Source: Chlorokybus atmophyticus | Lineage: Eukaryota > Plantae > Mesostigma and Chlorokybus algae | Reading direction: 5' to 3' | Assembly: GCA_009103225.1 (NCBI GenBank) | Contig: RHPI01003369.1 | Location: forward strand, 783,822-847,821 | Length of the DNA stretch: 64,000 nucleotides | In this document: positions 19,435-61,952 of the stretch, piece by piece | How positions within the stretch are numbered: the first letter of the stretch is position 1 | Layout: every line of letters begins with the position of its first letter | Translations under genes and position numbers: made by a program | The notes under the pieces: generated by a model | Database searches by the model: none | What the model saw: only the letters and a program-made list of their open reading frames with translations | What the model was told of the DNA's origin: nothing

Positions 19435-19528
<94 letters not shown>

Positions 19529-29725: not shown

Positions 29726-30460
29726 CTAGCGATGATTCACATCATCAGTACTGTAGAGTGCAGGCATAGTTTCATCACTCTCTATGCTCCAAGCAGGCAT
29801 GCAACACACTATCATAACAGATGTGGGCGGCATACAGCTGTTGTCATGCGGTGCGAGGCGTGAGATGCACGTCACCTGGTGGTACTTACTACTTGCTGGC
29901 AGAAACATGCGGCACGCTGCGTGCGCAGGTCCGCCAGCCACGGAGGCGGACGCGGCGCTGGCAACAGCCATGGAGTCGGCGGTGGACAGGGGCGTCTGGG
30001 ATGGCAGGGCGTGAGCGAGGGTTGGCATTGTGGTGTGCGCCCGTATGCGATCTGTGACATGTGTGAGAGCAGGACGCGTTGAGTTCGCACCCATGCATAT
30101 GTCCAGTATCCTTGGTGGAAGCGCTTTCAACAAATCCTGTACCTGTGCGCATGGTGCATGGTGGCGGCTGGAGACAAACGCTGCGGCAGCCGGAGGGCTT
30201 TGTGCAACTGTGACAGCAGCGTGTTGCCTGCAACAGGTGCAAGCGCTGGCTGTCAGGGAGTGATGAGCGGTGACGGTGCCAGGCTGGGTGTCCATCGCGC
30301 CGGGCCCCCCAAGCGCTGAGCCCAGCGCCGGGCGCTGCGCTAGCAGCGACGTGAGTGCCAGGAGCAATGCCATGCACACGCAGAGGAGCTGGTGGAGTCA
30401 GGGCAAGCGATGGCGAGGATGAGGACAGCGGCGACGGCACTGGCTGTGAGGTGTGCATGT
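29726..30460 (-). other. Conserved block C, copy 1 (possible degenerate gene or non-coding part of the repeated unit)
   Basis: Shares AAGCGCTGAGCC...GC(G/A)CTAGCAGCG..GTGAGTGCC.GGAGCA with 36660-36720 and 48598-48650, and GGCGGCATACAGCTGTTGTCATGCGG with ~47950. Copy 1 has a 217-codon minus-strand ORF, but frames are not conserved across copies. Confidence 0.5.
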
Positions 30461-31070
30461 GTGTGTTGTGCTATCAACAATCTGTGCGTGGTTAGTGGGG
30501 TAAGAGCGTGATGAGCGTGATAAGTGGTGTACTGGCCTGTTACAAGCAACGGGTGCTGTGCGGGAACGGGTCCTGGTCTGTGTGCAGATGTATGCATCAC
30601 TGTGAGCAACCTAGCACAAGAAATGGGCGTACACATCAGCCCCATTTGTATAACAGGTAACAACACGCTAGCTGAAGAACCTATTCAGAATAGTACGGTG
30701 TTGGGTTCACTGTTCACCACGGGATGCAACCTGGTTTATGACATTATACTCCTCTGTAAAGTGTGCTTTGCGCAAAGGCCAGCACTGCTTGCCGGCAGCT
30801 TCACCGAGGCAGGATTTATGGGGACCCAGGTAGTCGCCTGAATTGTGATGTCTGTAAGCAGGATGGCTTGCAAGGGATGGTTTAAATGAAAGCAAGTGGA
30901 GTAACGCGGAGAAGCTGATGCAAATATGTACACAAGCCAGATCGAGCACTTTATCTGCAACCAGAGCCACGTGGCAAAAGTGAGTTGCGTTGGCAGTAAG
31001 TAAGTAACAGCACCGACATGACGCTCAGCTAGCATGACCTGCATACCTGGCGCAGTCAAGTCGGGGGCAG

Positions 31071-31798
31071 TCACATTATGCCGTTTCGCAACACCTCGTT
31101 CATTACCGCGTACAACTTCACTTGATCCTTCCCAAGCCTGGAGCATTTAGCCTGGAGGGCGCTGATGGTTTCCGCCTGGGTGCTGATTGTTCCCTCCATG
31201 TTGTCCATGCGGGTTCGCAGTGCAGGTACGCCTGCTGTACTGATGGCAACCTGCTGCAGCATGTCGGCTAAGTGCTGCAGCTGCGGCTGCGGCTCGGGCT
31301 GGGGCTGGGGCTGGGGCGGTGTCTGCTCGGGCGCGGGCGCGGGCTCAGGTGCGGGATGCCCTGGCTCGGCCAGCACATCGTGTATGTCACGGCCATTGAT
31401 ACGCCAGCAGCTGCTGCCATGGCGCTGCTTGTAGTTGCCGTGGCGTCCAGGAGTCGCCACGCAGGTGTTCTGTATGAGGTTGGTAAAAGACTGATACAGA
31501 GGGGGGCGCTGGCAGTGACGGCAGCGTACGCCAACCAGCAGGCGCCTGCCGACCACTTCACGAACGATGACGTACTCGCCACGGCAGGCTCTTACTGGAC
31601 GGCCATTAACCACGCAGCGCCTGGGCTTGCGGTTGCTGAGGACGGCGCCTTCAAACTTCAGGAGGACCTTGCTGCGCAACTGCCACAAGTGTACCAAGAC
31701 GCTGCATTGGAATGGGAAGGGTAGCCCTTTGACAGCACTTGCAAACAGCACAATGCAGGAGAGAACCAGTCAAGGAGTCCTACCTGAACGCGAGGCAT
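31071..31798 (-). CDS. Family A gene copy A1 (exons 31784-31798, 31071-31679; 207 aa): Cys-rich globular domain, PQ linker, coiled coil
   Basis: MPRVQ|LRSK...RRC...ACRGEY...VRCRHC...YQSF...TCV...WRINGRDIHDVLA; GT-AG intron in phase; paralogous to 37379, 41725 and 49491. Confidence 0.75.
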
Positions 31799-33022
31799 AT
31801 TTGGAGACACGAGGAGTAGCCAGGCACTGCGCAGCCAAGCCATCAAAATCAGCACACAACCTCTGCTCCTGTACTTGCCGCATGCACACCCACCAGTGAC
31901 CTTGGCATGCGATCTGGCGTGCCCATACTCACCAAGCGCTGGCGTTACTCCACCTCCACCTCCGCCTCCGAGACTACACTGCCGTGCGTGCAGCGCCGCC
32001 GTCGCCGCCGCCGCCCACAAGTACGCTGAAGGCACCCCTACAAGACGCGTGTGAGTGCCAGGGCTGGAGCTCAAACTCCATCAGACCTTTCCTGGCTTCC
32101 TGGTTTATGTCGGCGTGCGTACAACTGCGCAGGCCGTCCTTTGTGTAGCCGGCATCGTTGTTTTTCACTGCCTGTCGCGTCAATGCACACGGGAATTTTC
32201 GGCGCTGAATTGACGGGATTAAAGTACGCCCACGCGTGCCCTGCGTGGGCGTACTTTCTTGGGCTGGGCAACCGCAACCACACTCAGGGAGCCGTATACG
32301 GTGGAACATCGTGCGGGCAGGCAGGGCAGTTTGCGGGCTAATAGCGACCTCGAGAAGCGATATGCATCGCGCCGAGTGCTGTTTACAGCATCGCTGGCGG
32401 CGTGATCGTCCTCCCTAATATATTGTACGACACGATCTCACACGCGTGTGGGTTTTTGGTGCCTACCGCAGCGGTACCCGGCTAGAACTGACAAGTTGCC
32501 TGCCGCCAGCACGACGGTGTCGACATCAGTTCTTCGCTTTGCACAACACCGCGCCTGCACTTAGCTTTACGTCGGTTTATATAATGTTATATATATAAGC
32601 CTGCATCGTGAAGCACAGCGAGGCGACGGCAAGCTGACGCGCAGAATCAGCGAGCGCGACGCGGGCGCAGGCGGAGGCGGAAGCGGTGGCGGTCGCGGTG
32701 GCGGTGGCCAGCTGCTGGGAGGGGTTTGCACCTGCTTCGGTGTTACCGCCAACAAGGTTGCCACAGCTTCATACAACTCCACCACCACCGGTGCTGCTAC
32801 GGTGAGAGGTCACCTGTGCCGTCAAGCAAGGTTGCTAGTGCCTTGTTGTAACACTCTGCCCTTTGGTTGACACAGTCACGTCCTTCGTTATGTGAGCGCA
32901 ATCATTCACAGCGTCTTACTGTGTCGAATTGTCTGATCAACATGCACAACACTAAGTGTGACAGCGACAATGTGTTCCACCTGTACTCAACTTGTGATTC
33001 AGCAGGTTCAGCGTGTGGGGAA

Positions 33023-35288
33023 ATGGCAGGGGTGGGAGGAGAAAGGAGAGTGTTGCACCTGACTGACGACGACATACTTCGCGATCGTTACAAGTACTAT
33101 GCTGTGACATACGTTCTCTCGTGCGCTGGGTCGCCAAAGGAGCCGAAGTACCAGCTGCGCCCAGAGTTCAAGGCTGCGCGTGCTTGGCTACAAGCTGACA
33201 TGTGCCACTACCTCACGCCACAAGCTGCCGATCAGTTTCTCCATCTGCTGGAGTACTTTGGCAAGGTGAGAACTCATCTGATTTTCTGGAAACACCTCCC
33301 CCTGGAAACTGAAGTTGATGTTGTTGGTGATGATGGTGCTGCAGCAGCAGCAACGTCGCTGTTGTCATTGGTATTGCATGCTATCAGCTGATCGTCATTT
33401 GGCACACTACGGTGCAGCCTCCACCTGATCTCAGCCGCACGCGAGACAAGTACCTTGCAGACTTCTGCTCCTGGAATGAGCAGCACGCGGTTTACAAAAA
33501 AGACTTGGCACGCTCAGTAAACCCGCCTGTTCAGGTACCTTTGCATACATTTCCTGTGCCGGTAGCGCAAGAGTGTGAGGCACGCTCATCCAGTGTTAGC
33601 TCAGGCAACTAACAGTGGCTGCCCGCAGGAGAGTCATTTTGCTGACGGGCCATCAGCCGCAGGCAACGAAGCGCAGGTACGCTAGCAGGCACACTTGTGT
33701 GTGCAATTGCTTCCATCATGCATGGCGTGTATGACTCGTTTATGTCAGTCGCAGCCAAGTACAAGAAATGGCGTTGATGTTGAGCGAAGTTCAGGAACAG
33801 CGGCAACAGTCCTACCTGGCACAGAGGCTGCACCAACACCGCAGGTAAGCAAACAGATGTGTGTTCATTATGTTCGTTGCAAGCTCTCTTGCTTATGCTT
33901 TGCTGTTGCAGGAACAAGAAGCTGAGATGTTGACGGACCAACTGATGCAGCTGGTGGCTTCTGAAGCTGTATTGAAGAAACAGCTAGAGGAGCTTGCTGC
34001 TTCTACTCAAGCAAAGCAGCAAGCACTTGAGGAGGGGAAGCGCCAGTTGCTTGAAGAGCAGGAGAAGTTGGAAAAGGACTACGCGGAGAGAGAGGCGGTC
34101 TTGCAGCGACGCAAACACCAGATTGCTCTTGAGCTAAGTGAGTTGGCGGCAGCACAAACGCAAGCGCCGCAGGTACCACAGTATTCACTTGCCATTCACC
34201 CTGTGGTTTGCTGCATTATAGCAAAAATCGCTGTCAAGTTCAGTCCTGCCCCGGTGCTAACTATTATTATGTTGTCGTGGTCAGGTCCATGTTGACGACC
34301 ACATCTCTCAGCAGGTAAGTGCTGTTTTACGAGCAGCGGAATGCAATTCTTCTCTGCTCTTTGCACAGCGCTGAGCGTGACACCCTTCGACAGGTAAACA
34401 GCAGCATCGGCGCTGGCGGTGTTGAAGCGCACAAAGCCGATGCCGCTGACTGGGAGGGTGCAGTGAGTATAGCTTCTGACTCAGAAGAGGACGTGCCGCT
34501 CATTCAACGCAGATGTGTGCGAGCAGACACCATCAACTTGGACAAGGACGCTCCGCCAGATCCTGCGGACCGTCATTCTCCGGAGAGCCACAAAAGAAGA
34601 TCACCGGCTTCAAGCAACTCGCATATTGACAATACCCCGAGCGCACCTTTGCCGAAGAAGCGCCGCGTCAACCGCAAGAAAGCCCAGTGTTACATGGCAA
34701 AGCGTTATGCTGAGCGCGTACCAGACAAGCGCGCCAGCAGCGAGTTCTTCCGCAAGCTCCAACTCGACAAGTGCACGGTCCTGTCGAGGGCGAGAGACAA
34801 GCGCGTAGACCTACGCTCGACAGGTGGCAGGACGTGGCGGATGGACCTGTACTGGAGTTACAATCCCTCGGCTCGAGCAGCAGAACTGTTTGATGAGAGT
34901 GAGCATGCAGAGGCCGAGGCAAGATGGGAGGTCATGCTCATAAGGAAGGGCATCCTGCAGCTTGAAGACCTCCCTGAGGCAAGGCTTTTTGCCTCGCAGC
35001 TGTGCAGTATTTGTTGGTGTTGTTAGCGTTGTTGCCTGGCGATGCACATTGTGGAGAAGCTTGGTCTACCACTGACCGTCAGTGACAAAATGCTGTTGCG
35101 CTTGCCATTAACAGGCTAAGCACAAGAAGGAGTACTACTCGATAGGCAAGACAGCGATGCTGAACAACATTGCTGAGTTTCAGAAAGTCCGGGGCAAGTA
35201 CGCCAAGGCGCTCGGGGTCTCCGCATCCAGGCCCAAGGCCCAACAGAACACGTACAAAGACGTTCCTCGTGCTGAGGTGCCAACTTGA
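33023..35288 (+). CDS. Family B gene copy B1 (7 coding exons, apparently intact)
   Basis: Exons MAGVGGERRVLHLTDDDILRDRYKYY...FLHLLEYFGK | PPPDLSRTRDKYLADFCSWNEQHAVY | linker | coiled coil | VHVDDHISQQ | SDSEEDVPL..KKRR..WRMDLYWSYNP..KGILQLEDLPE | (GC-AG intron) AKHKKEYYSIGK...PT*. Same exon structure in the copies at 43701 and 57340. Confidence 0.78.
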
Positions 35289-35936
35289 AGACACCGCTTG
35301 CATTTGCGGACCGGCAGCTGACAAGCATGCATCCCCTGGCAGCTCCGGTGTAAGTAGGGTGGGTATGAGCTTAGTGAGTCGTTTCGGAAAATGACCACAT
35401 GCTGGAAACATTGAGGCATAGGCTCAATTTTGCTCCTGTTTAAACAGTTGATAGATAAGATGTTGTACACCTCCATGGTGTGTTGCATATGATTAGAACA
35501 ACTTACTGCTCTGGTTGTGTACAGTACCGTAGTATAGTATACGACTGACTGCAACACGCATTCTCACATTACTGATGTTTTCAGGCTGTTTCATGTCACA
35601 TTAATGTGGGTAGCGTTGTGATGAGTATGCAATGGAGATGCGTATCTGTCAACATGTTGGTCTCACTCGCACAAGGGGTTGATGGGCTAAAGGTCTGTCA
35701 CCAACATAAACAGCTCAGCAGGTTCTTAGAGAGAACAGACGACCAGGGGATGCACAGACGCAGAGAGGACCTCACCCACACCACGCTCCACTTACACCCA
35801 CACCCACACCGCGCACGCATCGAGCGAGGGCGAGAGTGAGCGTGAGCTGGTGAGAGCGGATGTAAGAAAGACAGCGAGAGCCAGAGCGCAAGCGCTGAGC
35901 GCCAGCGCGGAGTGCGGAGTGCGGAGCGGCAGGCGC

Positions 35937-36300
<364 letters not shown>

Positions 36301-36495
36301 TATTGACTGGCTCGCTTTGATGTTACGGCAAGGCTTCGAACCGGAATCAAGACAGCCGCTTGCGAGTGTTGCCCTAAAGTGAGGGTCAATGACAAGATTT
36401 CAACGGGCAGGTTTCCAGTGACAGCCTCACCACGACAATATAGAGCAACAGCCTCTAGATGGATCCACTAGATGCTAGTAGTTTTGGCGCACATA

Positions 36496-36830
36496 TTAGA
36501 CATGTAGCGCACGCTGATGCCCTACCAGGGCATCAGCGTGCGCTAAATGTCTGTTATGAGCTCTAGTTCTCCTGTCTGGAAAGCTGAAGCTATCTGAGCC
36601 AGGCGCGTTCTGACCTCGCTCGCTCTGCAATGGGCGCCCGCGAGTTGCATCGGACCCATCAAGCGCTGAGCCGGACACTGCGCTAGCAGCGGCGTGAGTG
36701 CCTGGAGCAGTGCCACGAGCACGTGAAGGCACCCGTGGTGTTAGGCTGAGCTGTACATGTGGGGAAAAGCGTGGAGGAGGATGGCGGGAGCGGCGACGAC
36801 GGCGGTGGCTGTGGCGTGTGCGCTGTGTGG
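36496..36830 (-). pseudogene. Block C copy 2 fused to a remnant of the 3' end of a family D gene
   Basis: 36535-36635 is homologous to 60880-60975. Its translation ASEVRTRLAQIASAFQTGE matches the D C-terminus ASEFRKRLAQMASILQTGS*, and the ATGTCTGTTATG.GCTCT 3' flank is shared. Confidence 0.65.
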
Positions 36831-37378
36831 ATCGTTATATGTACGTGGGGTGAGCGTGACGAGTGTGAGAAGCGTGATGTGACTGCCAGTCGTGAGCAAC
36901 TGGTGCTGTGCTGGAACTCATGTACACTTGTCTACATCAGTATGAGCCACTGGCACAGTTGCAAGAAGCGGGTGCGTACAACAAGCTGGGTCATAAGTAT
37001 GACCAAGCGGCTGAAGCTACATAAGATGCAGTGTCGGGTCAATTGTCGCATCAGGGATTGCAAGCTAATGACTTTGTATTCTGTACAGAGGTCCGCGCAG
37101 TGCGCAAAGGCCGCAACTGCACTGCTCGGGGTTGGGCAGTCGTCTGATCTGAAGCCCTGTCAGGTTGCATACTTGGCTTGCAGGAAATGGCGTCGATGAA
37201 AGCAGGTGGCGATGCCGATGCGGAAGGACTCAAGTACGTCTCATTCAGGCTGACTGACCTGGTTATCTGCAACCAGAGCACAGCGGCATAAGTGAGTGGC
37301 GTTGGCAGTAAGTAGCAGCACCGACATGTTGTTCAGCAAGAGCAACCTCCGTACCTGGCGCAGTCAAGTCGAGGGCAG

Positions 37379-38111
37379 TCATATCAGGCCGCTATGCAGG
37401 AACAGCTGGCGCACAACCTCGGTCAACCTCTGCTGATCAGATTTGAGGTCACTGGTTGTTTCCTCCACTTCGCCTAGGCGCATCTGCAACGTGTCCTGGT
37501 TCTCCTGCAGCGTGTCCTGGTTCGCCTGCAACCCAACGATATGCATGCGCATGTCTGCCGTATGCGTGGCAACCATCTGCTGCAGCAGGTCGACGCGTAC
37601 GTAGCGAGCGTCCAGCTCCGGCTGCGGCGGTACCGGTGCCTGCTCAGGCTCTGGCTGTGGTGCGGGATGTCCTGTCGCGGGGGGGGCCCTTTGTGCCTGC
37701 ACATCGTGCAGGTCGAGGCCATTGACAAGCCAGCGGCCGCGGCCCCCAAGACCCACCACGCAGGTGGCCTCTAAGATCTGGGTGTAAGACTGATACAGAA
37801 GGGAGTCCGGACACTGACGGCAGCGCACTCCAAACTGTGAGCGCCCGTTGACCACTTGCATCCCGTAGACGTACTCGCCATGGCAGTCTGCCGCTGGCTG
37901 GCCATTCACCTTGCAGCGCCGGGGCACGCTGTTGGTGAGCACGTCGCCTTCACGCAGGAATGGTTTGATGTAACGCATCTGCCACAGATGTACAGAGACG
38001 ATGCGTTGGGATGCAACAAGTAGCTCACTACATGTGACAGCACTTGCACACAGCATGATGCACCAGAACCAGCTAGTTGAGACCGCCTACCTGGCTCACG
38101 TTGCGGGCCAT
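37379..38111 (-). CDS. Family A gene copy A1b (exons 38091-38111, 37379-37978); no adjacent B partner
   Basis: MARNVSQ|MRYIKPFLREGDVLTNSVPRRC...CHGEY...VRCRQC...YQSY...TCV...WLVNGLDLHDVQA + PQ linker + coiled coil ending HSGLI*. Confidence 0.75.
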
Positions 38112-41100
38112 GGTTGGACCGAAGAGCAGCTCAAGGCACTGCGCAGTCAAGGCACAGACAGACAGTTCACAACCTGTACTTCCTGACCTGCCACATGCAC
38201 ACGCATCATGCTGCACCAGCACAGTTGATTTGCGAGCTGGCGTGCCAGTTCTCACCAGGCTAGCGTCGTGCTTCTCCACCACAAGCACTTACTGCCGTGC
38301 GTGCAGCCCCGCTCCCGCCACCGCCGCCGCCGCTCACAAGTACGCTGAAGTCTTTGACTCTACTCACCCTTGCACACTGCAGTGCCAGGGCCAAAACTCA
38401 ATAAATGGATGGTCGTTCACCTCCACGGGCATTGGTCGCGCAGGCCGTCCTCGACGCAACCGGCATCTGACGCGGACATTGGCGCCACGCCAATTGTCCC
38501 TGACGCCGCCGGCACGACGGCCTAGCTGATCTGACAAAATGCACGTGGTGTACTTTCTTGGGCTTCAAGCCTAATAATTACACGACATAAAGGAAACGGC
38601 TTTCAAAGTCAGCTATCGACGGCCCCGGAATTGGACTGCGATGGACCGCGACGATGACTCACAACAAAGGGCCGCCGGCGCATCATTTTCTTTGCTGTGC
38701 GCGGATGCTGCAAGCGACAAAAAACCTTTGCGAGTGCGAGCAGCTGCGTAAATCCGAGGCCTACACGTTAACGCGCCATCGTGTACCGTCATACTGGCTG
38801 ACAGGCCTGTCAGCCAGTATCTTTGCTGTACAGCGGCACAATCTACACGTGCGCGGCAGTCTTGACTGTTCGGCGGAAACTGACGAGATTGTGGGATTGC
38901 GATTGTTTGTGAAAGATCCCGTAGCCTACGGGCTGCGGTGGCCGGCGACGGCGGAGGGCCGCCATGTATCGATGATTCCGCCCCTTGAACACTACAGTTT
39001 AAAGGAGTCGTTTACGATAATGAAAGACACATGACATGTCGCAAGCAGCTTTGAGACATAGGAATGAAAAGCGCGTATTGCTTCAACAAGCTTTGCATGG
39101 ATTCGTATTTAAAAAAAATAGTGTTCAGCCGTTAGCTGCATATCCCTTTCCAATATGTGTATTGTGCTCACATCGTATATAAACCTTTCGCAACACACGT
39201 CTAAAAGCTTGCGACGGAGATGCAAGCACTGCTTGATGATAGTTGTGACGGTTGTATGGGCATTGGTAAGTGTGCAATCACTACACTACAGCCGCAAACA
39301 AAAACAAACAACAACACGACAGACGCAGCCTGTGATGCTTGTTACAAAGTGACTTTGTAACATACATAGTGAGGAACATTTATGAGATATGTGACTCCTT
39401 GTATTGTCACGACATTTAATAGTATACCATAGTACTTAAAGTGTCATGTGCACTTATAAGTGCAAGTTTATAAGTGCAAGTATACATGATACATCGTGTA
39501 TACGTTGCATACAGGATTATATTTGCAACATATACTCCAAAGCATTAGCATATCATATGATTGGAATATTACGTCTGCATTCTCATGCTACCAGCAATTC
39601 AAGGTCATTCACGCGAAGGAATCTACGCATTATGCCATGCAAGAAAGGTTCAATTCCAAGATGTGTCTTGCAATAAGGATAAGAACATGTTTTTGGATGA
39701 TCCACTGGCGCTGAGCGCGCAAATGCGTGGACCTAGTAGGGCTGGCTTCGTAGCGGAGTAAAGGTAACTGCAGCCATGTGGTGAAAGTGCAAAGTCCGTG
39801 GTGAAGCTAAGGGAAAACAAGTAGGGTGGTCCATTAGACTGCTTAATGCTGTTACACTTAGTTAACAGTCTCATAAACAAGGATGCTTAGAGAGATGCAC
39901 ACACATGCCTTCGTGTGGTTGTTCTATAGGCTAAGTAAAATGAGATTACGCACTACAAGCACCGAGTCCACAACGTGAAAGTGAATGCCAAATCAGTTGC
40001 ATGCAATGGTGAATGACAAAGCAGGGCACCATGTTGGTATGAAGGTGATGCAGGTCGCAGGCATCGGACGCAGTGACCACATCCGTGTGAGCAACACAAG
40101 CATGCCGTACGCAAGCCGGAACGCGACATAGCAAGGAAAAAACAACAATAAAGCTTACACAACACAGGGGTTACATAGTCAACACACACGGGTAGCTATG
40201 GTTGTCAGCTGTCGCACTCAGTTGTCGCACAGACACATAGGTCGTTTCAGCCTGATGATTGCTGGCAGTCTTAGGATGTGTTATCGCCGCTTTTGCGTTA
40301 GTCCGCCCACTTGCAATTCACTGCCGACATCGGCGGTCGACCGCCGCCTTAGTATTTGCTTAAACCTAAGCTTTAGTATGTCGTTGACGTAGTCCGCAGC
40401 CAGCGACTCCTTTCCTGACGGGTCGATGTCACCGCTGGCGGTCAACGGGCGATGTTACCGCTGGCAGTTAGCGGGTTTTTGAGATAGTACCATCAATGGA
40501 GCCGGCTCGGCCGATTTAAATCGGATCTATTGGACCCAACGGGGCGCATAGAGGGTGCAAGGGAGAAATGCGCCGATCGAGATCGTGAGAGTTGGTATTG
40601 CGACAATGGTCCTATATTGAACTCTCGGGGGTGGGAAAAAGATGGCATTAAGCATGCATTATGGCAAAAAAGGCAATAATTATGCGAGGAAGAGGGCAAG
40701 ATTCATTTTACTTGGACCGGCACAACATGAATGAACATTGCGAGTTTTCACACTTTTTCCTCGTTTCTCGCTGCATACGATTGTACCACAAAGTGTGCCT
40801 GATATTGGATAAAAGTCAAGCAAACTTTTTAACTATTTAACTTTCTTAAAAACACTCATATTCAATTTTAGTTTAGGATTCAACAAAAAATTGAATCAAA
40901 ATGAATGCATGACTTGCTTGCTTGCATGCAATTGCGCGATGCGATTTGGTTAAGTTGGGCTCTTACATCATGTATGTCATGGGCTATGATTGATCTTTGT
41001 TGACCAGATGTCATGAACATCGGAAAGAGAACTCAGGGTTATTCATAATTGAGAAGCGCAGAAACATGCGAAGATTCTTTTGCAAAAATTATCTACTCTT

Positions 41101-41300
41101 GTATGCAATGCATGAAGGAGCAAAGGAGTGAAGAGTTTGAAAACATAACCTATTTATCGGTTTACAGTGCACTGATGTTTATAGTGCACATGCAAATAAA
41201 ATGACACAGCCATGCATTGTAATTTTGCCCCCCTTTAAAACTCAAGGGGGGGCACTTGGCAGACTGTCAGGCCGTTGCGACACGTGCTTTCTGTTGTACT

Positions 41301-41585
41301 TGCCTAGCAATGCTCAGGCAGCACAAGCAAGGTTGGGATGCCATTCTTGCTTGTGCACGCATGCATACAAGGCACAGCAACAATGCATGTTGCTCAACAT
41401 TTGTGGGTTTCAAACTGCAACAGTACTAGTAGGTTCATCGTTGCTAAAAATAGACGAACCAGTACTTGTGCAAGAGTTGACTAGCCAGGAAGGCCAAGGC
41501 TTGCCAAGCATGGGGTGCTGTGGCAAATAGTGGCAAGCTTGTCATCACTCACCACAAGCATGTACAATGAGAACATGAGATTCTA
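41301..41585 (+). repeat. ~285-bp dispersed repeat, inverted copy at ~60462-60750
   Basis: CTTGCTTGTGCACGCATGCATACAAGGCACAGCA.CAATGCATGT...GGCAAGCTTGTCATCACT is nearly identical to the reverse complement of 60462-60750. Confidence 0.85.
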
Positions 41586-41724: not shown

Positions 41725-42630
41725 CTACACCTCCCCCGCAAGCTGGCGTACGACCTCTGCAACACTGCGAACGGCTTGAGTGACAGCATCCAGCCGCTGA
41801 GCCATATGCTGCTGCCCCTCCTCAAGGACATCCACCCTCTGCACAACGCTTGATGTGTTGGTGGCAATCTGCTCCAGGGCACCGAGCATCCGCACAGTCC
41901 AGTCCTCCTGCTGCTGCGCGGGCTGCTCACTCGCCTGCTGCTCCATGTCTACGCGAGCTTGCGAGCTCCCATTTGCCGGCTGCGCATGCGCGGGCTGCAC
42001 AGGTGCCTGTTGCGGCTGTGGTGGTGCACGCGCCTGTGCACGTGGTTGCGGGTGGGGTGGTTGCGGTTGAGCTGCTGCTCTGCGGCGAGAGCCAGCTATC
42101 GCCACCCGCAAGTCTTACACTCCGTTGAGCAGCCAGCGGCTGTTGGATGGACGGCGGTTGTACATGCCGCTGGGTTTGGGTTGCGCCAGGCATGTTGTGC
42201 CAAGGAGGCCATTAAAAGAGCGAAAGCTTTGAGCTTGACGGCAGTGCCGGCAGCGCAGCACACGCACGAGCCGGCCAGTCTTCGCACGCCGCAGCACGCA
42301 CTCGTATTGGCCCCGGCAACCGCTGGCCGGGCGCAGACCACGCCCGCGAGGTGCGTTGCAGCGGATTGGCGGGTTGCTTGTGAGGATGTCTCTCACACGC
42401 AGGTGGTGCAGGACGTGGCTCAACTGGACAGAGTGCGTGCAAGATGTAAGATGTGAGAATGAGCTGCAACAAAGAAAGGACACAATGAACTGTTGTAAAC
42501 CAGCGCAAGCATTGCATGTGTGCAAGGGGAAACAGTAATTGTGAAGCAAGACGCAAGCACACCTGCAGCCGCTGCAACTGGTTGTTGGCGTTAGGTATTA
42601 TTGAGCCTGTGAGCTGCAGCTGAAAGACAA
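41725..42630 (-). pseudogene. Family A copy A2 with in-frame premature TAA (42115-42117)
   Basis: Exon 41725-42423 is 233 codons in one frame (LSHVLHHLRVRD...CRGQY...LRCRHC...TTCL...WLLNGV*DLRV...), interrupted by a single TAA between the domain and the PQ/coiled-coil tail. The first exon differs from other A copies. Confidence 0.7.
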
Positions 42631-43700
42631 GCGATTGGTGAAGGTAAGCAGCAACCAAAGATGTGACGCAATTGAACGCCAGCAACCAAACAGGAACTTC
42701 CTGCTTGAAGCAATGCACGACCTTTAACAGCAGTGCTACGCTACAGCACAGCTTCAAGGCAGAGTGACAGTGACTGGGGTTGCAACTTGCCTGCCCGCTG
42801 GTTAGGTTGCACCTGCGCCAGCTGCCACCACACGAACACGCAAGCGCCCTCCCGCTCTTTCTCGTGAGGAGATGGCTCCTCACGTGCCGCCCTCCGCCGC
42901 CGCCTATGCACTCTAGCTACCTTACCGCTACGCACCATACACGGTGTGTGCACATGGAGATGTGCATGGCACAGCGACCAGGGAAAAAAGGGACTGAGCT
43001 GCGCCGACGGCGTTCTTGAAGACTTGACGTATTCACGCAGCCCGGAAATGTGATGCGCCGTACTGATAAGCGCCAGCGAAGCAGCATCCCAAGCACGTGG
43101 GTGTACGTCCGCAGGCGCATCCTTCGCGGCCGCTAGTGCTTGCGTAATCACCCCTTGTATTTTGACGCGACGTTAGGGCTACGTAAGATACGGCAACGTC
43201 GCGCCAACCCGCTGCGCAAAACACAACGGCGGCGGCGGCGGAGGAGGACGAGGCGGCCAACGGAGAGGGTTTGCGCTTTTCTTGCAGTTGATGACATCAA
43301 TGAGAGAGGGGCTTGGCCAGTCGTTACGCCTGCTCCCCACTGCGCTTGCGCGTATAATATGGTCGACGCTGCTACCGGTGCAAGGTAAGCGGTCGAGCAA
43401 CCTCCCTATTGCTATCATGAGACTCTGCGCTCTGCTTACTTGCGTCGTTGCGAAATAAGAGCTTGTGCCTGTCAACACAAACCTGCTAGCTCACATGATT
43501 GCCAACACACGCACACACACACGCTCGCACGCACAGAGTTGGTCATCGTGTCCTGTCTGTTATGCATGACAAAATTCACAGCGTACCCACAGCTTACATT
43601 TTGCAGTCGCTGACCAATATGCACAGCATGAAATGTGACAGCGACCAATACTCTCCACCTGTGTTCAGCTTCTGCTTTCTCAGGTTTGGCGTGTGGAAGC

Positions 43701-45975: not shown

Positions 45976-46480
45976 GTACATTACGTGTGTTTGCGGATCA
46001 GCGGCACTCAAGCGCATGTCATGGCACTGAAGGTAGCTGTGCCCTGGTGAAGCAGCCGGGTGAGCTAGGTGAGTCATCTGCGTTGTATGTGTGCTGCAAT
46101 GCGAGTTGTTACAGACATGAGCAAGCAAGTACTTTCTCTCCAGCACACTTCTACCAAGCTCAACAAGCTGCTTGCTGCGGCCTTAAGGAAAGCACTGGTG
46201 TTGCAACAGATGTTGCCACACCTCGCTGGAAACGGGCACTAAGTTGCATTTTCTTACAGGGATGCTGTGTGGCCTGAAGATGGGACGAGCACAGAGCTCA
46301 ACGCTTGCTCGGTGCTATTTGGAGTTCTGAAGGCAGCGGGTTGCTCACGCAGGCCGTGGAAGAGTAAGTGATGCGTTGATACATACAATGTAGTGTGACT
46401 GTGCACGGGTGTATTTGCGGGCACACGCGTGCGTGAGCAGGCACATATGCACGCGCATGCATGCCCCCCCCCACCCCCCC

Positions 46481-47929: not shown

Positions 47930-48750
47930 AGCAATTATGTACATGGGTGCGGCGGCATACAGCTGTTGTCATGCGGGGCGCGGCATGAGCAGTATGCCGC
48001 CCAACGGGCGAGATCTGCTACCCGGCTGGCGGCAAACCTGCAGCTTGCATGCTCGGCGAGCAAGTTTCAGTCCTGTGCGCATGGCGGTGGCTTGAGGCGC
48101 AGCACCCGTGGCACGACGGGCAAGTCATGTGCCTGTGCGCACGACGTAGAGCAGAGGTGGCTGGAGGGCTTTGTACCACAGTGCCGGTAGTTTTATTACA
48201 TGTCTAATTGGGCAACATCGTCACACCAAGCCACGTACTGTCAGCCCTGCCTATCACTGCACAAGCATACTCACACGCATGCCAGCGGCATGCAAGCACG
48301 CCTACACGACTACACTGCCGCAGCCGCCAGCACAGCGTCCGCTTCCGCCGTTGGCGCCGCCGTCTGGACCAGACCCCAGCCTGGTACTGCCGTTACGACT
48401 GCCGCCCCCCGCTCCAGGATGGTGATGCCCTGGGCACGCTGCAGCGCGCATGACACGCGCTGCCGGTAGTGCGCTGCAGCCGCCAGGCTACTCGCTGCCG
48501 CAAGCGCTGGCGGTCATGGAGCGAGCGGTGGGGCTGGCGGCAGTGCCAGCCAGGCTGGGCACCCGTTTGCGCCGCGCTGACAGCGGCCAGCCCCCGAAAG
48601 CGCTGAGCCGGACGCTGCACTAGCAGCGGTGTGAGTGCCAGGAGCACTTGAAGCAGCCGGCGATGTCAGGCTGAGCGCTAGCGAGGACGAGGACAAGGAC
48701 GTGGACGCGGGAGCGGTGGTAACGGTGGCGATGGCGTGTGTGCAGTTGTA
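47930..48750 (-). other. Conserved block C, copy 3
   Basis: Homologous to 29820-30460 at both ends (GGCGGCATACAGCTGTTGTCATGCGG; AAGCGCTGAGCCGGAC.CTGC.CTAGCAGCGG.GTGAGTGCC). Confidence 0.5.
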
Positions 48751-49106
48751 TTGTGTGGTCAGCAACATGTGCACGGTGTGCGAGATGAGTGTGTGACAAA
48801 CGTTACAACCGTTGTGTGACTGCCAGTACTGAGCAACTGGCGCTGTGCTGACACTTGTGTACGATTGTATATACAGTGTGAGCTGCCAGGCACAAGAAAA
48901 AAATGGGTGCGTACACCCAGCCCAAGCTGTAATATAGGTAACAACACAATGGCTGCTGACACTACTTGGGATATTACAGTGTCTATGACTGTTTAACCAG
49001 GGACACAATATGAAGTATAGAAGTAAGTTACTCTGTACAGAGGTGCATGCAGTCCGCAAACGCCGAAACAACGCTTGCCAGCAGCTGTACCGGGGAGAGG
49101 GGCGGG

Positions 49107-49490: not shown

Positions 49491-50332
49491 TCATATCATG
49501 CCGCCATGCAGTAACACCTCGCGAATCACTGCGTTTAGCTTGCGCTGATCAGCCTCCACTGCACTTGTCCTGCGTTGGAAGTCCTCGACCAGCTTGCTGA
49601 TCATGTCCTCCACTGCACACACGCGCGTCTGTAACGCGTCCTGCTCTGCTCGCAATCCGGGCAGGCCAGCCGTGTTGGTGGCAATCTTCTGCAGCAACTC
49701 AGCCATGCGGTCCTGCTCCTGCTCCTGCTGCGGCTGTGGCTGCGGCTGCTGCGGTGGCTGCGGCTGCGGTGCCTGCTCGGGCTCTGGTTCAACCTCAGGC
49801 TCAACCTCGGGCTCTACCTCTGGCTCTGGTGTTGGATGTCGTGGCTCTGGTGCCTGGGCTGCCCCGTAACCCCTGAGAGCCAGCACAGCGTGCATGTCCC
49901 TGCCATTGAGGAGCCAGTGGCTTCTGCGTGGGCGGTGGATGTAGCCGCCGCGGCGCCTTGGATGTGCCACGCAGGTGGCCTCTACAACTTGGTCGAAAGT
50001 CTGATACAGAGGGGAGCCTTCGCAGTGACGGCAGCGCACCGTAACCATCCGGCGCTGCTTGCTGACTTCAACTTCGCAGACGTACTGGCCACGGCAGTCT
50101 CTCACTGGTCGGTCCCTTACCATGCAGCGCAAAGGCACGCTGTTGGTGAAGACGTCGCCGTTGCGTAGGAAGGGTTTGATGCTACGCATCTGCCAGAGTT
50201 GTACAGAGGCTGAGTTGGGATGTGACAAGGTGCCCAACCTTTGAGATGATGATGGTGCACACAGCATGATGATGCAGAAGGGGACTAGTGAAGAACGCGT
50301 ACCTGGTTTCGGTTGTGGTTGAGGCGAGGCAT
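49491..50332 (-). CDS. Family A gene copy A3 (exons 50303-50332, 49491-50189), intact
   Basis: MPRLNHNRNQ|MRSIKPFLRNGDVFTNSVPLRC...CRGQY...VRCRHC...YQTF...TCV...HWLLNGRDMHAVLA + PEVE/PQ linker + coiled coil ending HGGMI*. Confidence 0.78.
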
Positions 50333-51514
50333 CTTTGCGAACGCGAAGAGCAACCTAAGGCACTGCACAGGTAAGGCATGAGTATGAATTCACAACCTCT
50401 GCTCCCTGACCTGTCTCATGCACAAGCACCATGCTGCACTAGTAAACTTGGCATGCAAGCTGCCGTGCCAAGACTCACCAGGCGATAGCGTTACACGACC
50501 TTCACCACCGTGCGAAACACCGCGCTCCCGCCGCCGCCGCCGCCCACAAGTATGCCGCCGACTACGACTGCTCACCCCTACAGATTACAAGGTGCAGTGC
50601 GTGCCAGGGCCGAAGCTCAACCCCACCAGTGATGGCGTTTCTGTGGACGACGGCTGCGCAGCCGGCGGCTTTGTCTCTAGTGCCTGTCCTGTCAAAGGAA
50701 CGGGTGAACTGATGTGACGTAAAGGGCAACTTGCAGCCGGCGTCTTTGGTCGCTACTGCCTGTTGCGTCAACGTAGACGGGAAGAACTTCAGCTAGCTGA
50801 TGTGACATAGTCGCACACGTGCTCGGCGTGGCGTACACTTTCTTGGGCTCAAGCGTACAAACTATGCACGGAAACGGTTTGCTGCGGAACATCGTACGCC
50901 AGGGCTGATCCAGAATTGCACCAGACACCGGGAATGCGAGCGCGGGAGGCAATGCGCACTGCGCGGCTGGGGCAGGTGCTAGGGAAGGGCATCATGTGCC
51001 GCCAGCGCGATTGTGTCGACATCAGGATCTTTGCTGTACGACACGATTCCGCACGCGGCAGCCTTGGAGCCCGGCGCTAGCAAACCCGTTGCCTCAGGCT
51101 GCGGTAGCCGGCGACTGCGGGGGTGCCACCCTTAGTGAAACAAGGTAGGCCTGATAGACTATAGTAATAGCACCCAACTTCACATGATTCACAAAGAGCT
51201 ACATTGCATGTTTGAGCAGCAACCGCGACATTTTGCTCGTTGCTGACGATGATGTTATTAAATATGCATTGCCACACAAATACCGCTCCAATTATATTAA
51301 TACCATGCTCTCACTTGGCCACATCATGCTACACCCCTTGCTGTAGGCATTTTATTTGTTATAGACTAGGTTGTTATGCGCACGCTGCAATCACAATTGC
51401 GGCTAAACCTATACACCAACATTTAATCATCGGGTCCCACATCTGAAGGAAAGTTGTGTGGATGCCAGCTACATGGTGGTTAATACAACATATGACAATT
51501 AATGCATGCGCATG

Positions 51515-52024: not shown

Positions 52025-52026
52025 CA

Positions 52027-56285: not shown

Positions 56286-57339
56286 GTCAACCCCCGTTAA
56301 AAGACTTCGGTTTAAGATAATAACCCCGTTAAGATCATAGAATTGCAAAAGACCGACGACAGGCAAATATCATCGGTTGGAGGAATAGTCTTGTACGTAA
56401 CAAGAGTAAAGCGAAGGCTTAAACTTTTGAGTGGGCTCTGTCTTGTAACGGAGGAAGATCTCGTTAATGGCATGCCTATTCCATTTTTGTTAGCATTAAC
56501 ATGTTACAAAACTCATATATAATTTCGATTATAATATAATCGTTGATGACCATTTCTCGATTTTGTTTATACCACGCTGACATGTGATGATGTGGCTTAC
56601 GGTCATTACGCATTACCCCTGGTAGTGGAATATACATTTGTTAAACAATAAGAGAATACATATTTTTATAAGCGCCAAGAGAATAACCCCGTTAGTGCAA
56701 TGAAAAGCTGAAAGATAAACATGACCCTTTTTTTGGGGGTAACCTGTACATGCAACACGGCTGAAAGGCAGACTGACATTGTTGCAACTAGCCTGCCCGC
56801 CGCTCATATTGCACCCACACCACGTGTACGTCCGCAGGCGCATCCGTTGCGGCTGCCGCTGGTGTTTGCGTAATGGGCCTTGTATTCTGGCGTAACGTTT
56901 AGGCTTACATAGAATACGTCAACGCCGCGCAAATCTCGCTGCGCAGATTCAACGCCGCTCGTGCAGCGGTGGCGGCGGCGGAGGTGAAGAAGAAGGCGGC
57001 GGCCAGGGCGGAAAGGGTTTGCGCTACTTCTGCGGCTGATGACATCACAAGAGAGAGGTTTGCTCGCCACTGCGCTTGCACACAGCAACGCCGCTACTAC
57101 GGTAAAAGGTACCGTCAAGCCACCTCGCTAGTGCTGCGTCATGAGACTCTGCTTTCGTCATTGCGGAAAAAAGCCTGTGCATGCCAACACAATCTGCTAG
57201 CTCACATGATTGACACACCCATGCACGCAACCACACTCACCACGTCACCGGTCTGACATGAACAATGTCCGCAGAATCGTGACATCAACAACGTGTACAT
57301 ACACCACTGAGCTTGACCCATGATCTGCAGATTGGGCGT

Positions 57340-59668
57340 ATGCAGATGCCGGCAGAGGTTGAAGGAGAAGGGAGACTGTTTCACCTGACTGACGATGACA
57401 TGCTTCACGATCGTTACAAATACTACAATGTGACATATGTTCGCTCACAATCCGGGTTGCGTACAGAGCCGAAGTACCAGCTGTTTCCAGAGCTCAAGGC
57501 CATGCATGCTTGGTTACAAGCTGACATGTGCCTCTACCTCACGCCAAACGCTGCTGATAGGTTCCTGGATTTGTTAAAGTACTTTGGCAAGGTGAGTTCT
57601 CACCTGGTTTTCTAGACAAACACCGCCTCCTGGAAGCTTCAGGTCGTTGTTGTTGTTGTTATTGTCGTGGTGGTGGTGGTGATAGTGGTGCAGCAACATC
57701 GTCGTTGTTATTGTTCCTGCGTGCCGACATCTGATCATTATCTTGTGACACTACGGCAGGCGCCACCTGATCTTAATCGCACGCAAGACAGATACCGCGC
57801 AGATTTCTGCGCCTGGAATGAGCATCACGCAGTGTACCCGAAAGACTTGAAACTCTTGTCATACCCACCCGCTCAGGTACCTCTGCATACAAATACTATG
57901 CCGGCAACGCAAGTCTGTGAGGCGCGCTCACCAGTTTAAACGTAAGCACCCAACAATGGCTGCCGGCAGGAGAGTCATCGTGCTGACGGGCCATCAGCCT
58001 CAGGAAACGGAGCAGAACCGGTATGCTAGCAGGCAAACCTGTATATGCCTTTGCTCGCAGTGTGCATGACTTACATATGTGTCGGTTGCAGCACAGTACC
58101 AGAAATGGTGATAACGTTGCAAGAAGTCCAAGAACAGCGGCTACAGAAAAGCCCGGCACATCAGAGTGTACACCAACACTGCAGGTATGCACGCAGATGT
58201 TCATAAGTGTGTTCATTGCAAGTTGTTTTTCTTACGCTTGGCTATTGCAGGAACGCATTGGAGAAGAAGCTGAGAAGCAGAGGAAGCAATTGCAGCAGCT
58301 GGTGGCATCGCAAGCCAATGTGAGGAAACAGCTGGAGGAGCTTGCTGCTTTGAAACAAAAGCAGCTGCTCTCCCTTGAGGAAAGGCAGCGCCAGCTGCTG
58401 GTAGAGCAGGAGAAGCTCGACAAGGACTATCTGGCGAAGAAAGAGCAGCTTGAGCAGGAGAAGGCGGCGCTGCAGGGACGCAGACAACAGGTTGATCTTC
58501 AGCTCAGCGAGTTGTTCGGGGTTGAATCACCAGCACAGCAGGTCTTATGGAAGTTACTGCCATCGACCCTGCCTTGCTGCATCACAGCACGTATTGCTGT
58601 TGACGTCTACTTTAACACCAAGTGCTAAGCTTGATGTTGTTGTGGTCAGGTTCATGTCGACGAAGACGAAAGCGATAGCTCTCAGCAAGTAAGGCGCTTT
58701 ATCCCCGATCACCTCATTGGCTCTATTGCTGCTCTTTCCCAGCGCTGAGCTTTACACCCTACTACAGGCGGACAGCAACATCGCTGGTGGTGCTGAAGTG
58801 CACGAAGATGACGTCGGTCATCGAGATGCCGTGAGCATAGCTTCTGACTCAGAAGAAGATGTGCCACTCAAATGCCGCAGACGTTCGCGAGCAGACATCA
58901 TCAACTCGCACAACAAGGTTTCGCCGGATCCGGCGGAGCGTCATTCTCCAAAAAGCCAGAAGAGAGGACCACCTGCTGCGCCATGCTCGGCAAGCAACTC
59001 GCATAACGACAACACCCCAAGCGCAGCGTTTCACATACCTTCGCCGAAGAAGCCGCGCATTGTTCGCCAGTCTTACGCGGCAAAGCGTTTCGCTGAGCGC
59101 GTGCCAGACAACCGCGGCAGCAGTTTCTTTTTCCGCAAGCTTGGGCTCGACAAGTGCACGGTCCTGTCGAGGGCGAAAGACATGCGCGCAGACCCTCGCT
59201 CAAGCGGTGTCGTGCAGTGGCGCATGGACCTGTACTGGACTTACAACCCCTCTGCTCCGGCAGCAGAACGGTTCAATGAGAGCGACTATGCCGAGACCGA
59301 GGCATCATGGGAGATCATGCTGATTCAGAAGGGCGTCCTGCAGCTCAAAGACCTCCCTCAGGCAAGGCTGTTTGCCTTCCCTTGCGGACTGGATTGTTGG
59401 CTTTTGTTGTTTATAATGAGTCCGTTTTTCAGTGCATGCTGTTGGATGGCTTGTTCCGTCACTGCATGTTGTGCTTGGCCATCAACAGGCTAAGTATAGG
59501 GAGGAGTACTACTCGGTAGGCACAAAGGCAGTGAAGAAGGACATCAAGGGGTTTCAGGAGGTCCGGAGCAAGTATGCCCAGGCGCTCGGGGTATCCGCAT
59601 CCAAGCCACGTGAAAAAAACAAGTACAAAGACATTCCTCGCGCTGAGCTTTTTCCGCCCAAGCCTTGA
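57340..59668 (+). CDS. Family B gene copy B3 (apparently intact)
   Basis: Same seven-exon structure as B1, in phase: ..DRYKYYNVTY..FLDLLKYFGK | APPDLNRTQDRYRADFCAWNEHHAVY | ... SDSEEDVPLKCRRR ... WRMDLYWTYNP ... LKDLPQ |GC-AG| AKYREEYYSVG...PPKP*. Confidence 0.78.
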
Positions 59669-60908
59669 CTGCATCGCCTGCATTTGCGGATCAGCAGCGC
59701 TGAAGCGCATCCCATGGCGCTGACAGCGTCTTGCAAACAACACATGCATGCACGCTCTGTCCAGGACACACTTGCCTGCCGAGCTGGACAAGCTGCTCCT
59801 TGCGGCCTCCGGACAAGTACTGCTTTTGCAACAGAGGTGGCACGCCTATGCCAAAACGGGCACCGCATTTTCCTCTTATGCCAGGTGATGCGTGTGCGGA
59901 CGCGCTGACATGCGCATGCAAGCCCATGTGCGTGTGGTGGCACATATGTAGTGGTTAACCTTTGAACACATTCCCTGTGTGCTCCTGAACAACAAACACG
60001 CAGATGGTTCGCTATCTGGATACACTTGGAGGGACATGCTCAGGCACCAGGGAGTCAAGCGCCACAACGTTGATGGGCACAAGCAGCTCGGGTGGCAAAG
60101 CTGGTAGCAAAGCTTGTGTAGTGCATCTCACTGCCAAGTGCGGACACTGTCATCAACTATCTTCACAAACCATTCAATGGCTTGCAGGTGGGCCTGGCTA
60201 GTGTCATCATCGTGTTGGTATGTCTTGTTGCACTACGGTATGTGCGCCCTTTTGCGCACACCCAAGCGCGCGCTCACGGGCATGTACGCTCATGGCCATG
60301 CACAGGCATACGCAAACACGCACAACTGCCTTCCCGTGTGCCACATGTGTAACTGAGTTGAATTGTATCTGCAGCAACAGTTCCGGGGGAGGGCGGCATG
60401 CCAGGAAGGTCACAAATAATGTCGAGGGTGCGCACAGGATCACCACACGCCGGAAATGCCTAGCATCTCGTGTTCTCATTGTACATGCTTGTATGTAGTC
60501 AGTGATGACAAGCTTGCCACTACTTGCCACAGCATCCCATGCTCGGCAAGCCTTGACCTGTTGCCTGGCTATTCAACTGTTGCATAAGCAATAGTTCGTC
60601 TGTTTTCAGCAATGATGAACCTACTACTACTGTTGCAGTTTGAACCCACAGAGTTGAGCGACATGCATTGCTGCTGTGCCTTGTATGCATGCGTGCACAA
60701 GCAAGACTGCCATCCCAATCTTGCATGTGCTGCCAGAGCATTGCCAGGCAAGCACAACACACAGCACATGTCGCGGCGGCGTGACAGTTTGCCAAGCGGG
60801 GGTCAATCAGGGGGGAAAAAACACATGTCAAGTGCGAGTGACAGCCTCGAGACGATACATAACAACAGCCTTCAGCACCACCATGCGCTACATGTCTGTT
60901 ATGTGCTC

Positions 60909-61952
60909 TCAACTGCCTGTCTGCAAGATCGAAGCCATCTGAGCCAAGCGCTTTCTGAACTCGCTCGCTTCTTGCAGCTGCTTCTCCAAGGCATCTGCTC
61001 TCTGCTGTTGAGCAAGCACGCGCTGCTCCATCTCCTGCAACCTGTCATCCCTGTCTTTGAATTGAAGCTCCCTGATCATGAGCTGCGACCTCGCTTCGTT
61101 TAACTGCCTGTCTGCATCGGCCAATCGAGCATTCAACTCATGCACCTCCTTGTTGCAATTTTCCAGCCGCCTTAGCTGCCCTTCCACTCTGGCCAACTCG
61201 TTATTGACCAGAGAACGTGCGGAGCTGAAGGCGTCCAACACAGCCTGCAGCTCTCCCTCCCCTTCACCACTAGCTGTGTGCTGTGCTGGTTGATCATCAC
61301 TGGCAGAGACAGGAGCCCCAGCTGGGGTTTCGTGCACGCTATCAGGTACTTGGTTTGTTGCTGAGGGAAGAGGAGCTTCAGCTGCTTGCTCATCATGTAC
61401 ACAGTTGGCCTCTGCAGCATCTACGATTGGACTAGTGCGAGCGCGATGTATGTCAACAGCCTCGACAACATCCACCAGCTGGAACAAGTTGTTGCCGACG
61501 CGCACCATGATGGCGTGGCCGCTGTTGGATTTCTCCCTGTCCCCTGCCTGCACCAGCCAGTTGGTGCTGCTCATTGGCGCGTTGTCCTGGCGGTCGGGGA
61601 CCTTCACGGGATCCCGGGAGTAGAAGGACCTGATGCCCTTCTTTCGCGGTTTGCTGTAGAGGTAATCCCTGCTCATCCAGCCCTCTGCTTTGGTCTTCTT
61701 GTGCTGGATACACACGTATTTCGGTATGTTAGACACAAATTTGACCAGCTCCTTCGCTTTGGCGGCACGCCAGGATCTGCTGTGCAGCTCTGAGCTCTGT
61801 TGTTCGAGCTGCTCGCTGCCTCCATGCATTGAGTCTGCGTCCAGACGTCCCGCTTCATGTTGCTCGTGTTGATGCCTCACAAGTACACGCTGCTTCTTGT
61901 TCGGTGGCTCAGCGTGCAGCGGAGAGTGCTCGTGCACCTGCTCTTCAGGCAT
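60909..61952 (-). CDS. Family D gene: single coding exon, 347 aa; basic N-terminus, globular (possibly SAND-like) domain, linker, coiled coil
   Basis: Long ORF right after a TAG acceptor; PPNKKQR NLS-like motif; C-terminal heptads (ELARVEGQLRRLENCNKEVHELNARLADADRQL). The upstream GCCGCCGCCGCCCAC leader (~62970) resembles the family A 5' leaders. Confidence 0.72.
   Translation of the reverse strand: MPEEQVHEHSPLHAEPPNKKQRVLVRHQHEQHEAGRLDADSMHGGSEQLEQQSSELHSRSWRAAKAKELVKFVSNIPKYVCIQHKKTKAEGWMSRDYLYSKPRKKGIRSFYSRDPVKVPDRQDNAPMSSTNWLVQAGDREKSNSGHAIMVRVGNNLFQLVDVVEAVDIHRARTSPIVDAAEANCVHDEQAAEAPLPSATNQVPDSVHETPAGAPVSASDDQPAQHTASGEGEGELQAVLDAFSSARSLVNNELARVEGQLRRLENCNKEVHELNARLADADRQLNEARSQLMIRELQFKDRDDRLQEMEQRVLAQQQRADALEKQLQEASEFRKRLAQMASILQTGS

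Follow-up and report, generated by a model that had tools for sequence, protein, structure and literature searches.

A tandem array of a divergent orphan gene pair in Chlorokybus, probably formed by old segmental duplication and birth-and-death evolution

Introduction

Chlorokybus is among the earliest branches of the streptophytes, the group that gave rise to land plants. Here we describe an array of repeated genes in a stretch of 64,000 nucleotides of its nuclear assembly (positions 783,822 to 847,821 of the forward strand of contig RHPI01003369.1, assembly GCA_009103225.1, deposited as Chlorokybus atmophyticus; hereafter the window), in which a unit carrying two unrelated and divergently oriented genes, A on the minus strand and B on the plus strand, recurs in head-to-tail copies. 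The assembly (JGI Chlat1) is now assigned to Chlorokybus melkonianii CCAC 0220; distances between Chlorokybus species are 0.025-0.08, the crown age of the genus is up to 76 million years, and sexual reproduction is unobserved in the genus (PMC8611356). The window is eukaryotic in character, with a G+C content of ~53%. An earlier note, made from the letters of the window alone, had described the array as a repeated set of four elements (C, A, B, and D) encoding putative nuclear DNA-binding coiled-coil proteins, and had proposed that it might be a birth-and-death cluster, a toxin-antidote or drive-like cassette, or the cargo of a DNA element. Our follow-up indicates that the array is probably the product of an old tandem segmental duplication of an orphan A/B pair that subsequently evolved by birth and death.

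Results

Organization of the array

The repeat structure was derived from a self-blastn comparison of the window, in which E-values ranged from 1e-8 to 0, far outside chance. The array consists of a colinear unit in head-to-tail copies, all in the same orientation and with 65-72% DNA identity between them, which agrees with the earlier description of a lineage-specific module with strongly diverged copies. Each full unit comprises a non-coding block C, gene A (minus strand), a shared upstream region, and gene B (plus strand), with introns, untranslated regions (UTRs), and promoters included. On the plus strand, unit 1 reads C1, A1, B1, a (GA)179 microsatellite, and a fragment of the neighboring gene D; unit 2 reads C2 and A1b, without a B gene; an inverted piece of the D 3' UTR, A2, B2, and an assembly gap come next; and the last copy reads C3, a second gap, A3, a set of long terminal repeat (LTR)-type insertions, B3, and D. 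The recurring unit and this order, including the absence of B after A1b and the D remnant between B1 and C2, were correctly recognized before.

Homologous segments are distributed along the whole unit. For B, 32933-35340 aligns with 43610-45946 (66%) and with 57351-59718 (71.5%); for A, 31369-32031 aligns with 37732-38401 and 49879-50620 (68-69%), and the A 3' end at 30951-31083 aligns with 37263-37391 and 49419-49503 (81%). Pieces of the A-B intergenic region are likewise shared (32144-32265 with 50732-50849; 32501-32538 with 50997-51035), as is block C (30299-30701 with 36651-36986 and 48586-48982, and also 29725-29864 with 47836-47989). Between copies, introns are 60-79% and exons 72-85% identical; since the alignments include introns, UTRs, and intergenic pieces, whole genomic segments must have been copied, as had been proposed. 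The three C blocks are:

29725..30701, minus strand: block C1, non-coding DNA that lies downstream of A1 and is homologous to C2 and C3 by blastn; probably a 3' UTR or flank
36651..37117, minus strand: block C2, non-coding
47836..49069, minus strand: block C3, non-coding, followed by an assembly gap at 49107-49278

Similarity among the C blocks extends over all six frames and includes stops, and they are thus non-coding; the interpretation of C as a gene was rejected for want of a conserved reading frame.

After A1b, where a B gene would be expected, the self-comparison found no B homology in 38400-41250. This interval consists of ~2.8 kb of AT-richer DNA (48-49% G+C) with no homology to any unit and no recognizable open reading frame (ORF). 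Of the two assembly gaps, neither of which interrupts a reading frame, the one at 49107-49278 separates C3 from the 3' end of A3 in non-coding DNA; the sequence on both sides of it follows units 1 and 2 colinearly, which supports the join. The other, at 46481-47199, falls in the inter-unit spacer after B2; its flanks (46240-46480 and 47200-47835) match nothing else within the window and lend no such support to continuity, and it could hide a further D remnant.

Gene B

RNA contigs were taken from two public runs of one 2021 study (X1 and X2) and aligned to 29700-35600 of the window only. The B copies are:

32638..35559, plus strand: gene B1, 517 amino acids, supported by spliced RNA contigs from X1 and X2 and by a frame check; 5' UTR exon 32638-32800; eight coding exons at 33023-33265, 33418-33534, 33629-33676, 33749-33844, 33912-34172, 34285-34314, 34394-34978, and 35115-35285; ATG at 33023, stop at 35286-35288
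43101..46239, plus strand: pseudogene B2, with several stops and frameshifts, exon 3 acceptor lost, and exon 6 deleted
56824..59863, plus strand: gene B3, intact, ~538 amino acids, with the same eight coding exons as B1 (57346-57591, 57760-57876, 57970-58020, 58086-58184, 58251-58541, 58650-58688, 58768-59361, a GC-AG intron, and 59489-59665)

B1 is transcribed and spliced, and the contig from X1, which is near-identical to the window, defines the gene model. In X2 this gene is also present in spliced form and differs at 83 of 1293 aligned bases (6.4%), a divergence that fits another Chlorokybus species and is within the inter-species range (PMC8611356). The acceptor of exon 3 differs between the two runs (33531-33628), with X2 adding eight codons in frame, which reflects either alternative splicing or a difference between species. 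The last intron of B1 (34979-35114) is of the GC-AG type, and the GC donor is kept in the equivalent introns of B2 (45669-45795) and B3 (59362-59488), and hence in all three copies. A public model of B1 (P0002, Chlat1/5931, 501 amino acids) matches ours except for 16 residues at this last junction; as the public model takes another donor and loses residues that the RNA contig retains, the RNA-supported B1 protein has 517 amino acids. B3 retains every splice site, including the GC-AG donor, and its exon lengths differ from those of B1 only by multiples of 3. Pseudogene B2 is nevertheless represented in the public annotation by a 232-amino-acid fragment (P0003).

Structures were predicted with AlphaFold2; the alignment for B added pieces of B3 and B2 to the complete annotated protein, and that for A comprised four copies. 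The mean predicted local distance difference test (pLDDT) scores were 58 and 57, respectively, with confidence confined to the long helices. The conserved N-terminal domain of B spans ~115 residues and is modelled as a hairpin with four helices (47-60, 66-78, 90-104, and 108-115; pLDDT 52-70); it is followed by a low-complexity linker, a central helix of 85 residues (167-251; pLDDT 95-99), and a conserved but poorly modelled C-terminal domain of ~170 residues. An acidic SDSEEDVP motif and a basic PKKRR-type motif are invariant between B1 and B3, and the latter, by inspection, looks like a classical nuclear localization signal. Judging from these motifs and the long helix, B (~520 amino acids) is probably a nuclear protein and would self-associate through the 85-residue helix; the conserved domains at its two termini would then serve as its working parts and bind chromatin, nucleic acid, or a partner.

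Gene A

The A copies are:

31071..31932, minus strand: gene A1 (inferred model), open frame of ~207 amino acids; 5' UTR exon donor at 31932; ATG mini-exon 31826-31784 (ATG 31798); main exon 31679-31074; stop 31071-31073
37379..38255, minus strand: gene A1b, open frame of ~206 amino acids, with no B gene after it; ATG mini-exon 38138-38091 (ATG 38111); main exon 37978-37382; stop 37379-37381
41725..42549, minus strand: A2, an A-type main exon with one in-frame TAA (42115-42117) and its acceptor kept
49491..50478, minus strand: gene A3, open frame of ~242 amino acids; ATG mini-exon 50362-50303 (ATG 50332); main exon 50189-49494; stop 49491-49493

The conservation of splice sites among A1, A1b, and A3 suggests a three-exon model, with a 5' UTR exon, a mini-exon that carries the ATG and contributes 15, 21, and 30 nt, respectively, always in phase 0, and a main exon. 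In A2 no recognizable ATG mini-exon was found, and this copy is a probable pseudogene. The earlier view that A2 and B2 are both dead is thus well founded for B2; A2, with a single stop and no mini-exon, is far less decayed.

The A protein begins with a predicted beta-rich domain of ~100 residues, in which five cysteines with the spacing C-x9-C-x20-C-x2-C-x16-C and a W..NG motif are invariant in all four copies, followed by a linker rich in Pro, Gln, and Glu and a C-terminal coiled coil (helix 158-223, ~65 residues). A (~205-240 amino acids) would be a small, probably zinc-binding protein with a C-terminal coiled coil and, like B, is probably nuclear. Its transcription would be driven from a bidirectional promoter region common to A and B.

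Divergence and selection

Comparisons of synonymous (dS) and nonsynonymous (dN) substitution among copies, which had been proposed earlier, gave for B1 and B3 a dS of 0.51, a dN of 0.21, and a dN/dS ratio (omega) of 0.41 when summed per exon over 511 codons, a value that indicates purifying selection on B. Pairs of A genes gave a dS of 0.57-0.72 and an omega of 0.58-0.77. When neutral substitution was simulated at the observed per-lineage divergence, a frame of the size of A stayed free of stops in 2-5% of trials per copy; that three A frames are open despite this expectation argues for selection during most of their history. Roughly a quarter of exon bases differ between B3 and B1, far more than the 6.4% that separate B1 from its X2 orthologue, and the duplications must therefore predate the split of these Chlorokybus species.

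Searches for relatives and folds

Searches of protein, structure, viral, and metagenome collections found no relatives of these families beyond the array itself. A profile of B exon 7, compared with 1.84 billion representative proteins, recovered only P0002 and P0003, the models of B1 and B2, both from the array locus, and word searches with D, A3, and the B N-terminus returned nothing beyond the models of D and B1 themselves. Family scans of A, B, and D (NCBIfam, PHROGs, and PADLOC) yielded only coiled-coil or low-complexity noise; Protein Data Bank (PDB) sequence searches with A and with both ends of B gave no match, and ESM Atlas feature searches with D 60-215 and B 1-125 gave no usable match. 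Neither viral contigs scanned with A and B profiles nor metagenome contigs scanned with B exon 1 contained relatives. Fold searches with the A and B models (VIA wide, Foldseek PDB, and Atlas) returned generic coiled coils or insignificant rows only, the best structural matches being coiled coils at Z 6-7, not above background. Calling the globular domains, which were modelled at pLDDT 40-70, new folds is not justified. The coiled coils attributed earlier to A, B, and D are supported by long predicted helices; the DNA binding attributed to the same proteins found no counterpart in any sequence or fold match to a DNA-binding domain. The three families are mutually unrelated, A having been compared with D and with B by hhalign.

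Two resemblances were considered in particular. The B N-terminus, as a small, mostly helical predicted module, is similar to ALOG and tyrosine-recombinase core-binding domains, and its stretch L..YFGK recalls the LDQFGK motif of ALOG proteins, although membership is not established. Unlike recombinases, B is without a recombinase catalytic domain, and an assignment of its N-terminus to either domain found no support: no recombinase or ALOG chain in the PDB matched at E up to 10, and no fold matched. The A domain resembles SAND and WRKY-GCM1-type domains in being beta-rich, in its size of ~100 residues, in its C-x9-C-x20-C-x2-C pattern, and in a conserved Trp; in these domains, as in A, pairs of Cys ligands are ~20 residues apart. 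A differs, however, in having neither a KDWK nor a WRKYGQK motif, and its identification as a SAND domain found no support, with KDWK missing, no match in sequence or structure, and model confidence too low for a fold assignment.

Gene D, the unit junction, and other features

The remaining features of the array are:

35940..36298, no strand: (GA)179 microsatellite in the spacer between B1 and the D remnant, with a single N at 35978
36489..36624, minus strand: D remnant between B1 and C2, marking the junction of units 1 and 2
41255..41585, plus strand: inverted copy of the D 3' UTR region 60461-60796, ~330 bp, 87-94% identity
52024..56285, no strand: LTR-type insertions splitting the A3-B3 intergenic region
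60461..62172, minus strand: gene D, exons 62172-62095 and 62012-60912, 377 amino acids, annotated as Chlat1/5934

The D ORF at 60912-61952 (minus strand) is 100% identical to eukprot jgi/Chlat1/5934 and encodes a protein with a C-terminal coiled coil and an N-terminal region without recognized identity. D had been counted as part of the repeated gene set; this was ruled out, as there is a single coding copy. The D remnant consists of a copy of the final ~19 codons and the 3' flank of D at 36527-36624 (from ~60875-60969; ~95 bp) and, at 36489-36523, an inverted copy of the start of this piece, which forms with it a near-perfect palindrome that extends to 36561 (35-nt arms, 3-nt spacer) and looks like the fold-back signature of a rearrangement. 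Both the D fragment and the palindrome are directly explained by a tandem duplication breakpoint inside D. The inverted copy at 41255-41585, from its identity of 87-94%, is clearly younger than the unit duplications, and the inverted pair that it forms with 60461-60796 may be a small mobile repeat.

The retroelement insertion noted previously between A3 and B3 was confirmed as three LTR-like repeats of ~450 bp (52024-52477, 52985-53446, and 55835-56285; 88-93%). No reverse transcriptase or integrase ORF was recognized in 52024-56285, and a solo LTR together with a non-autonomous LTR element would fit this arrangement.

Elsewhere in the window, 8511-11285 (minus strand) holds an open frame of 924 amino acids that is almost pure coiled coil, with internal tandem repeats of ~240 bp at 9820-10291. 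Directly upstream of the array, an ORF at 28704-29150 (plus strand) with three CCHC zinc knuckles and no NCBIfam match may represent either a CNBP-like gene of the cell or a relic of gag. A long poly-G/C run with a single N at 19529, within a glycine run of the ORF 19160-19579, is probably an assembly-difficult homopolymer.

Discussion

The explanation that we consider likely is that an orphan divergent A/B pair underwent tandem segmental duplication long ago and then evolved by birth and death, which amounts to ordinary growth of a gene family; a birth-and-death cluster is also the best fit among the candidates proposed earlier. The copies are adjacent and in the same orientation, their homology is colinear across introns, UTRs, and intergenic DNA, and the junction between units truncates flanking sequence. 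The ancestral unit would have consisted of a lineage-restricted A gene on the minus strand and B gene on the plus strand, with less than ~0.7 kb between their 5' exons, plus flanks. Unequal recombination is the most likely route by which this unit would have been copied, head to tail, at least three times, with one breakpoint inside the neighboring gene D leaving the 95-bp D fragment and the fold-back palindrome at the junction. Birth and death would have followed, with deletion of B from one unit, decay of B2, and gain of a stop in A2, and LTR elements would have inserted between A3 and B3; B1, B3, A1, A1b, and A3 retain open frames and splice sites. In its head-to-tail segmental copies that include non-coding DNA, its mixture of intact genes and pseudogenes, its transposon insertions, and its truncated neighbor at a junction, the array resembles the tandem NLR or F-box arrays of plants, which also evolve by birth and death; it differs from them in that the unit consists of two unrelated divergent genes from orphan families without recognizable domains, in 3-4 copies.

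Several observations weigh against this interpretation. No RNA contig from X1 or X2 covers A1, with only a 153-nt low-depth X2 contig in its 3' flank, and within the length range searched the annotated proteome contains no A gene; A may therefore be silent or condition-specific. Within this genome, copies were sought in the window and among annotated proteins, and dispersed unannotated copies may exist elsewhere. In comparisons that involve A1, the omega of the Cys domain is ~1. Moreover, no domain matched a known family or fold, the globular models are of low confidence, and the functions of A and B are wholly inferred.

Under the interpretation of ordinary family growth, A and B were duplicated together mainly through adjacency, with functional coupling a possibility. 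A stronger form of coupling, which we regard as unlikely, is that A and B depend on each other as an obligate two-component system, such as a heteromeric nuclear complex that controls chromatin or transposons; the co-duplication would in that case follow from selection for balanced dosage. The head-to-head layout, the intergenic blocks that units 1 and 3 have conserved, the long helix in both predicted proteins, and the retention of intact A and B in two units are what such a system would lead one to expect; however, A1b has kept its frame without a neighboring B, A3 and B3 are intact though ~5 kb of LTR insertions split their shared promoter region, B1 is clearly expressed and A1 undetected in the same transcriptomes, A and B evolve at different rates, and adjacency alone accounts for the co-duplication. 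A complex prediction for the B1 and A1 coils gave a score of 0.02, which counts neither for nor against binding. A more specific proposal, to which we give little credence, is that A and B are the halves of a Chlorokybus-specific nuclear system in which A would act as a zinc-binding sequence reader that recruits a dimeric scaffold B, for example in transposon silencing, with globular domains that would be new DNA- or chromatin-binding folds and an array that would diversify the specificity of A; such diversification is consistent with an omega of ~1 for the Cys domain, in which the five cysteines are invariant.

Alternatively, a locally amplified, large non-autonomous DNA transposon or Helitron-like element could have carried the unit as its cargo or internal region, which appears slightly less probable still. 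The orphan status of the gene families and the younger inverted copy of the 330-bp D 3' UTR piece at 41255-41585 would suit such an origin, but at the unit boundaries, where the earlier note had suggested looking for terminal repeats, a scan for inverted repeats showed none, direct terminal repeats are likewise missing, and LTR-like repeats occur only inside the 52-56 kb insertion. As the earlier note had reported, no transposase was recognized in long ORFs, nor was a Rep-helicase, reverse transcriptase, or integrase in those of the spacers, which is a weak test given that the library is prokaryote-centred. Within the window all copies are head to tail at one locus, from which the only relatives recovered among 1.84 billion representative proteins also come; B contains eight introns of host type, and its orthologue in a sister species is expressed. 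The fragment of a neighboring gene at the junction is, furthermore, expected of unequal recombination and not of transposition.

Finally, although tandem amplification, orphan status, pseudogenes, and a fast-evolving A domain (omega up to ~1) resemble known drive families, a selfish toxin-antidote or meiotic-drive cassette that amplifies and turns over rapidly is very improbable here, as the copies are old (dS ~0.5-0.7), predate species splits, and show no recent turnover, sexual reproduction is unobserved in the genus (PMC8611356), B is under purifying selection, and family scans found no toxin-like domain. On balance, the data favor neither a transposon nor a virus nor a drive element.

For the annotation of this genome, our analysis corrects the public gene model of B1, in which the GC-AG intron was missed, and identifies A genes that the annotation lacks. 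In other respects this is an ordinary tandem array, whose importance would rise only if A and B turned out to work together in the nucleus as a coupled system and to have new folds. It documents the birth, amplification, and loss of orphan genes on an early streptophyte branch, and it yields three uncharacterized protein families (A, B, and D) without relatives in very large collections.

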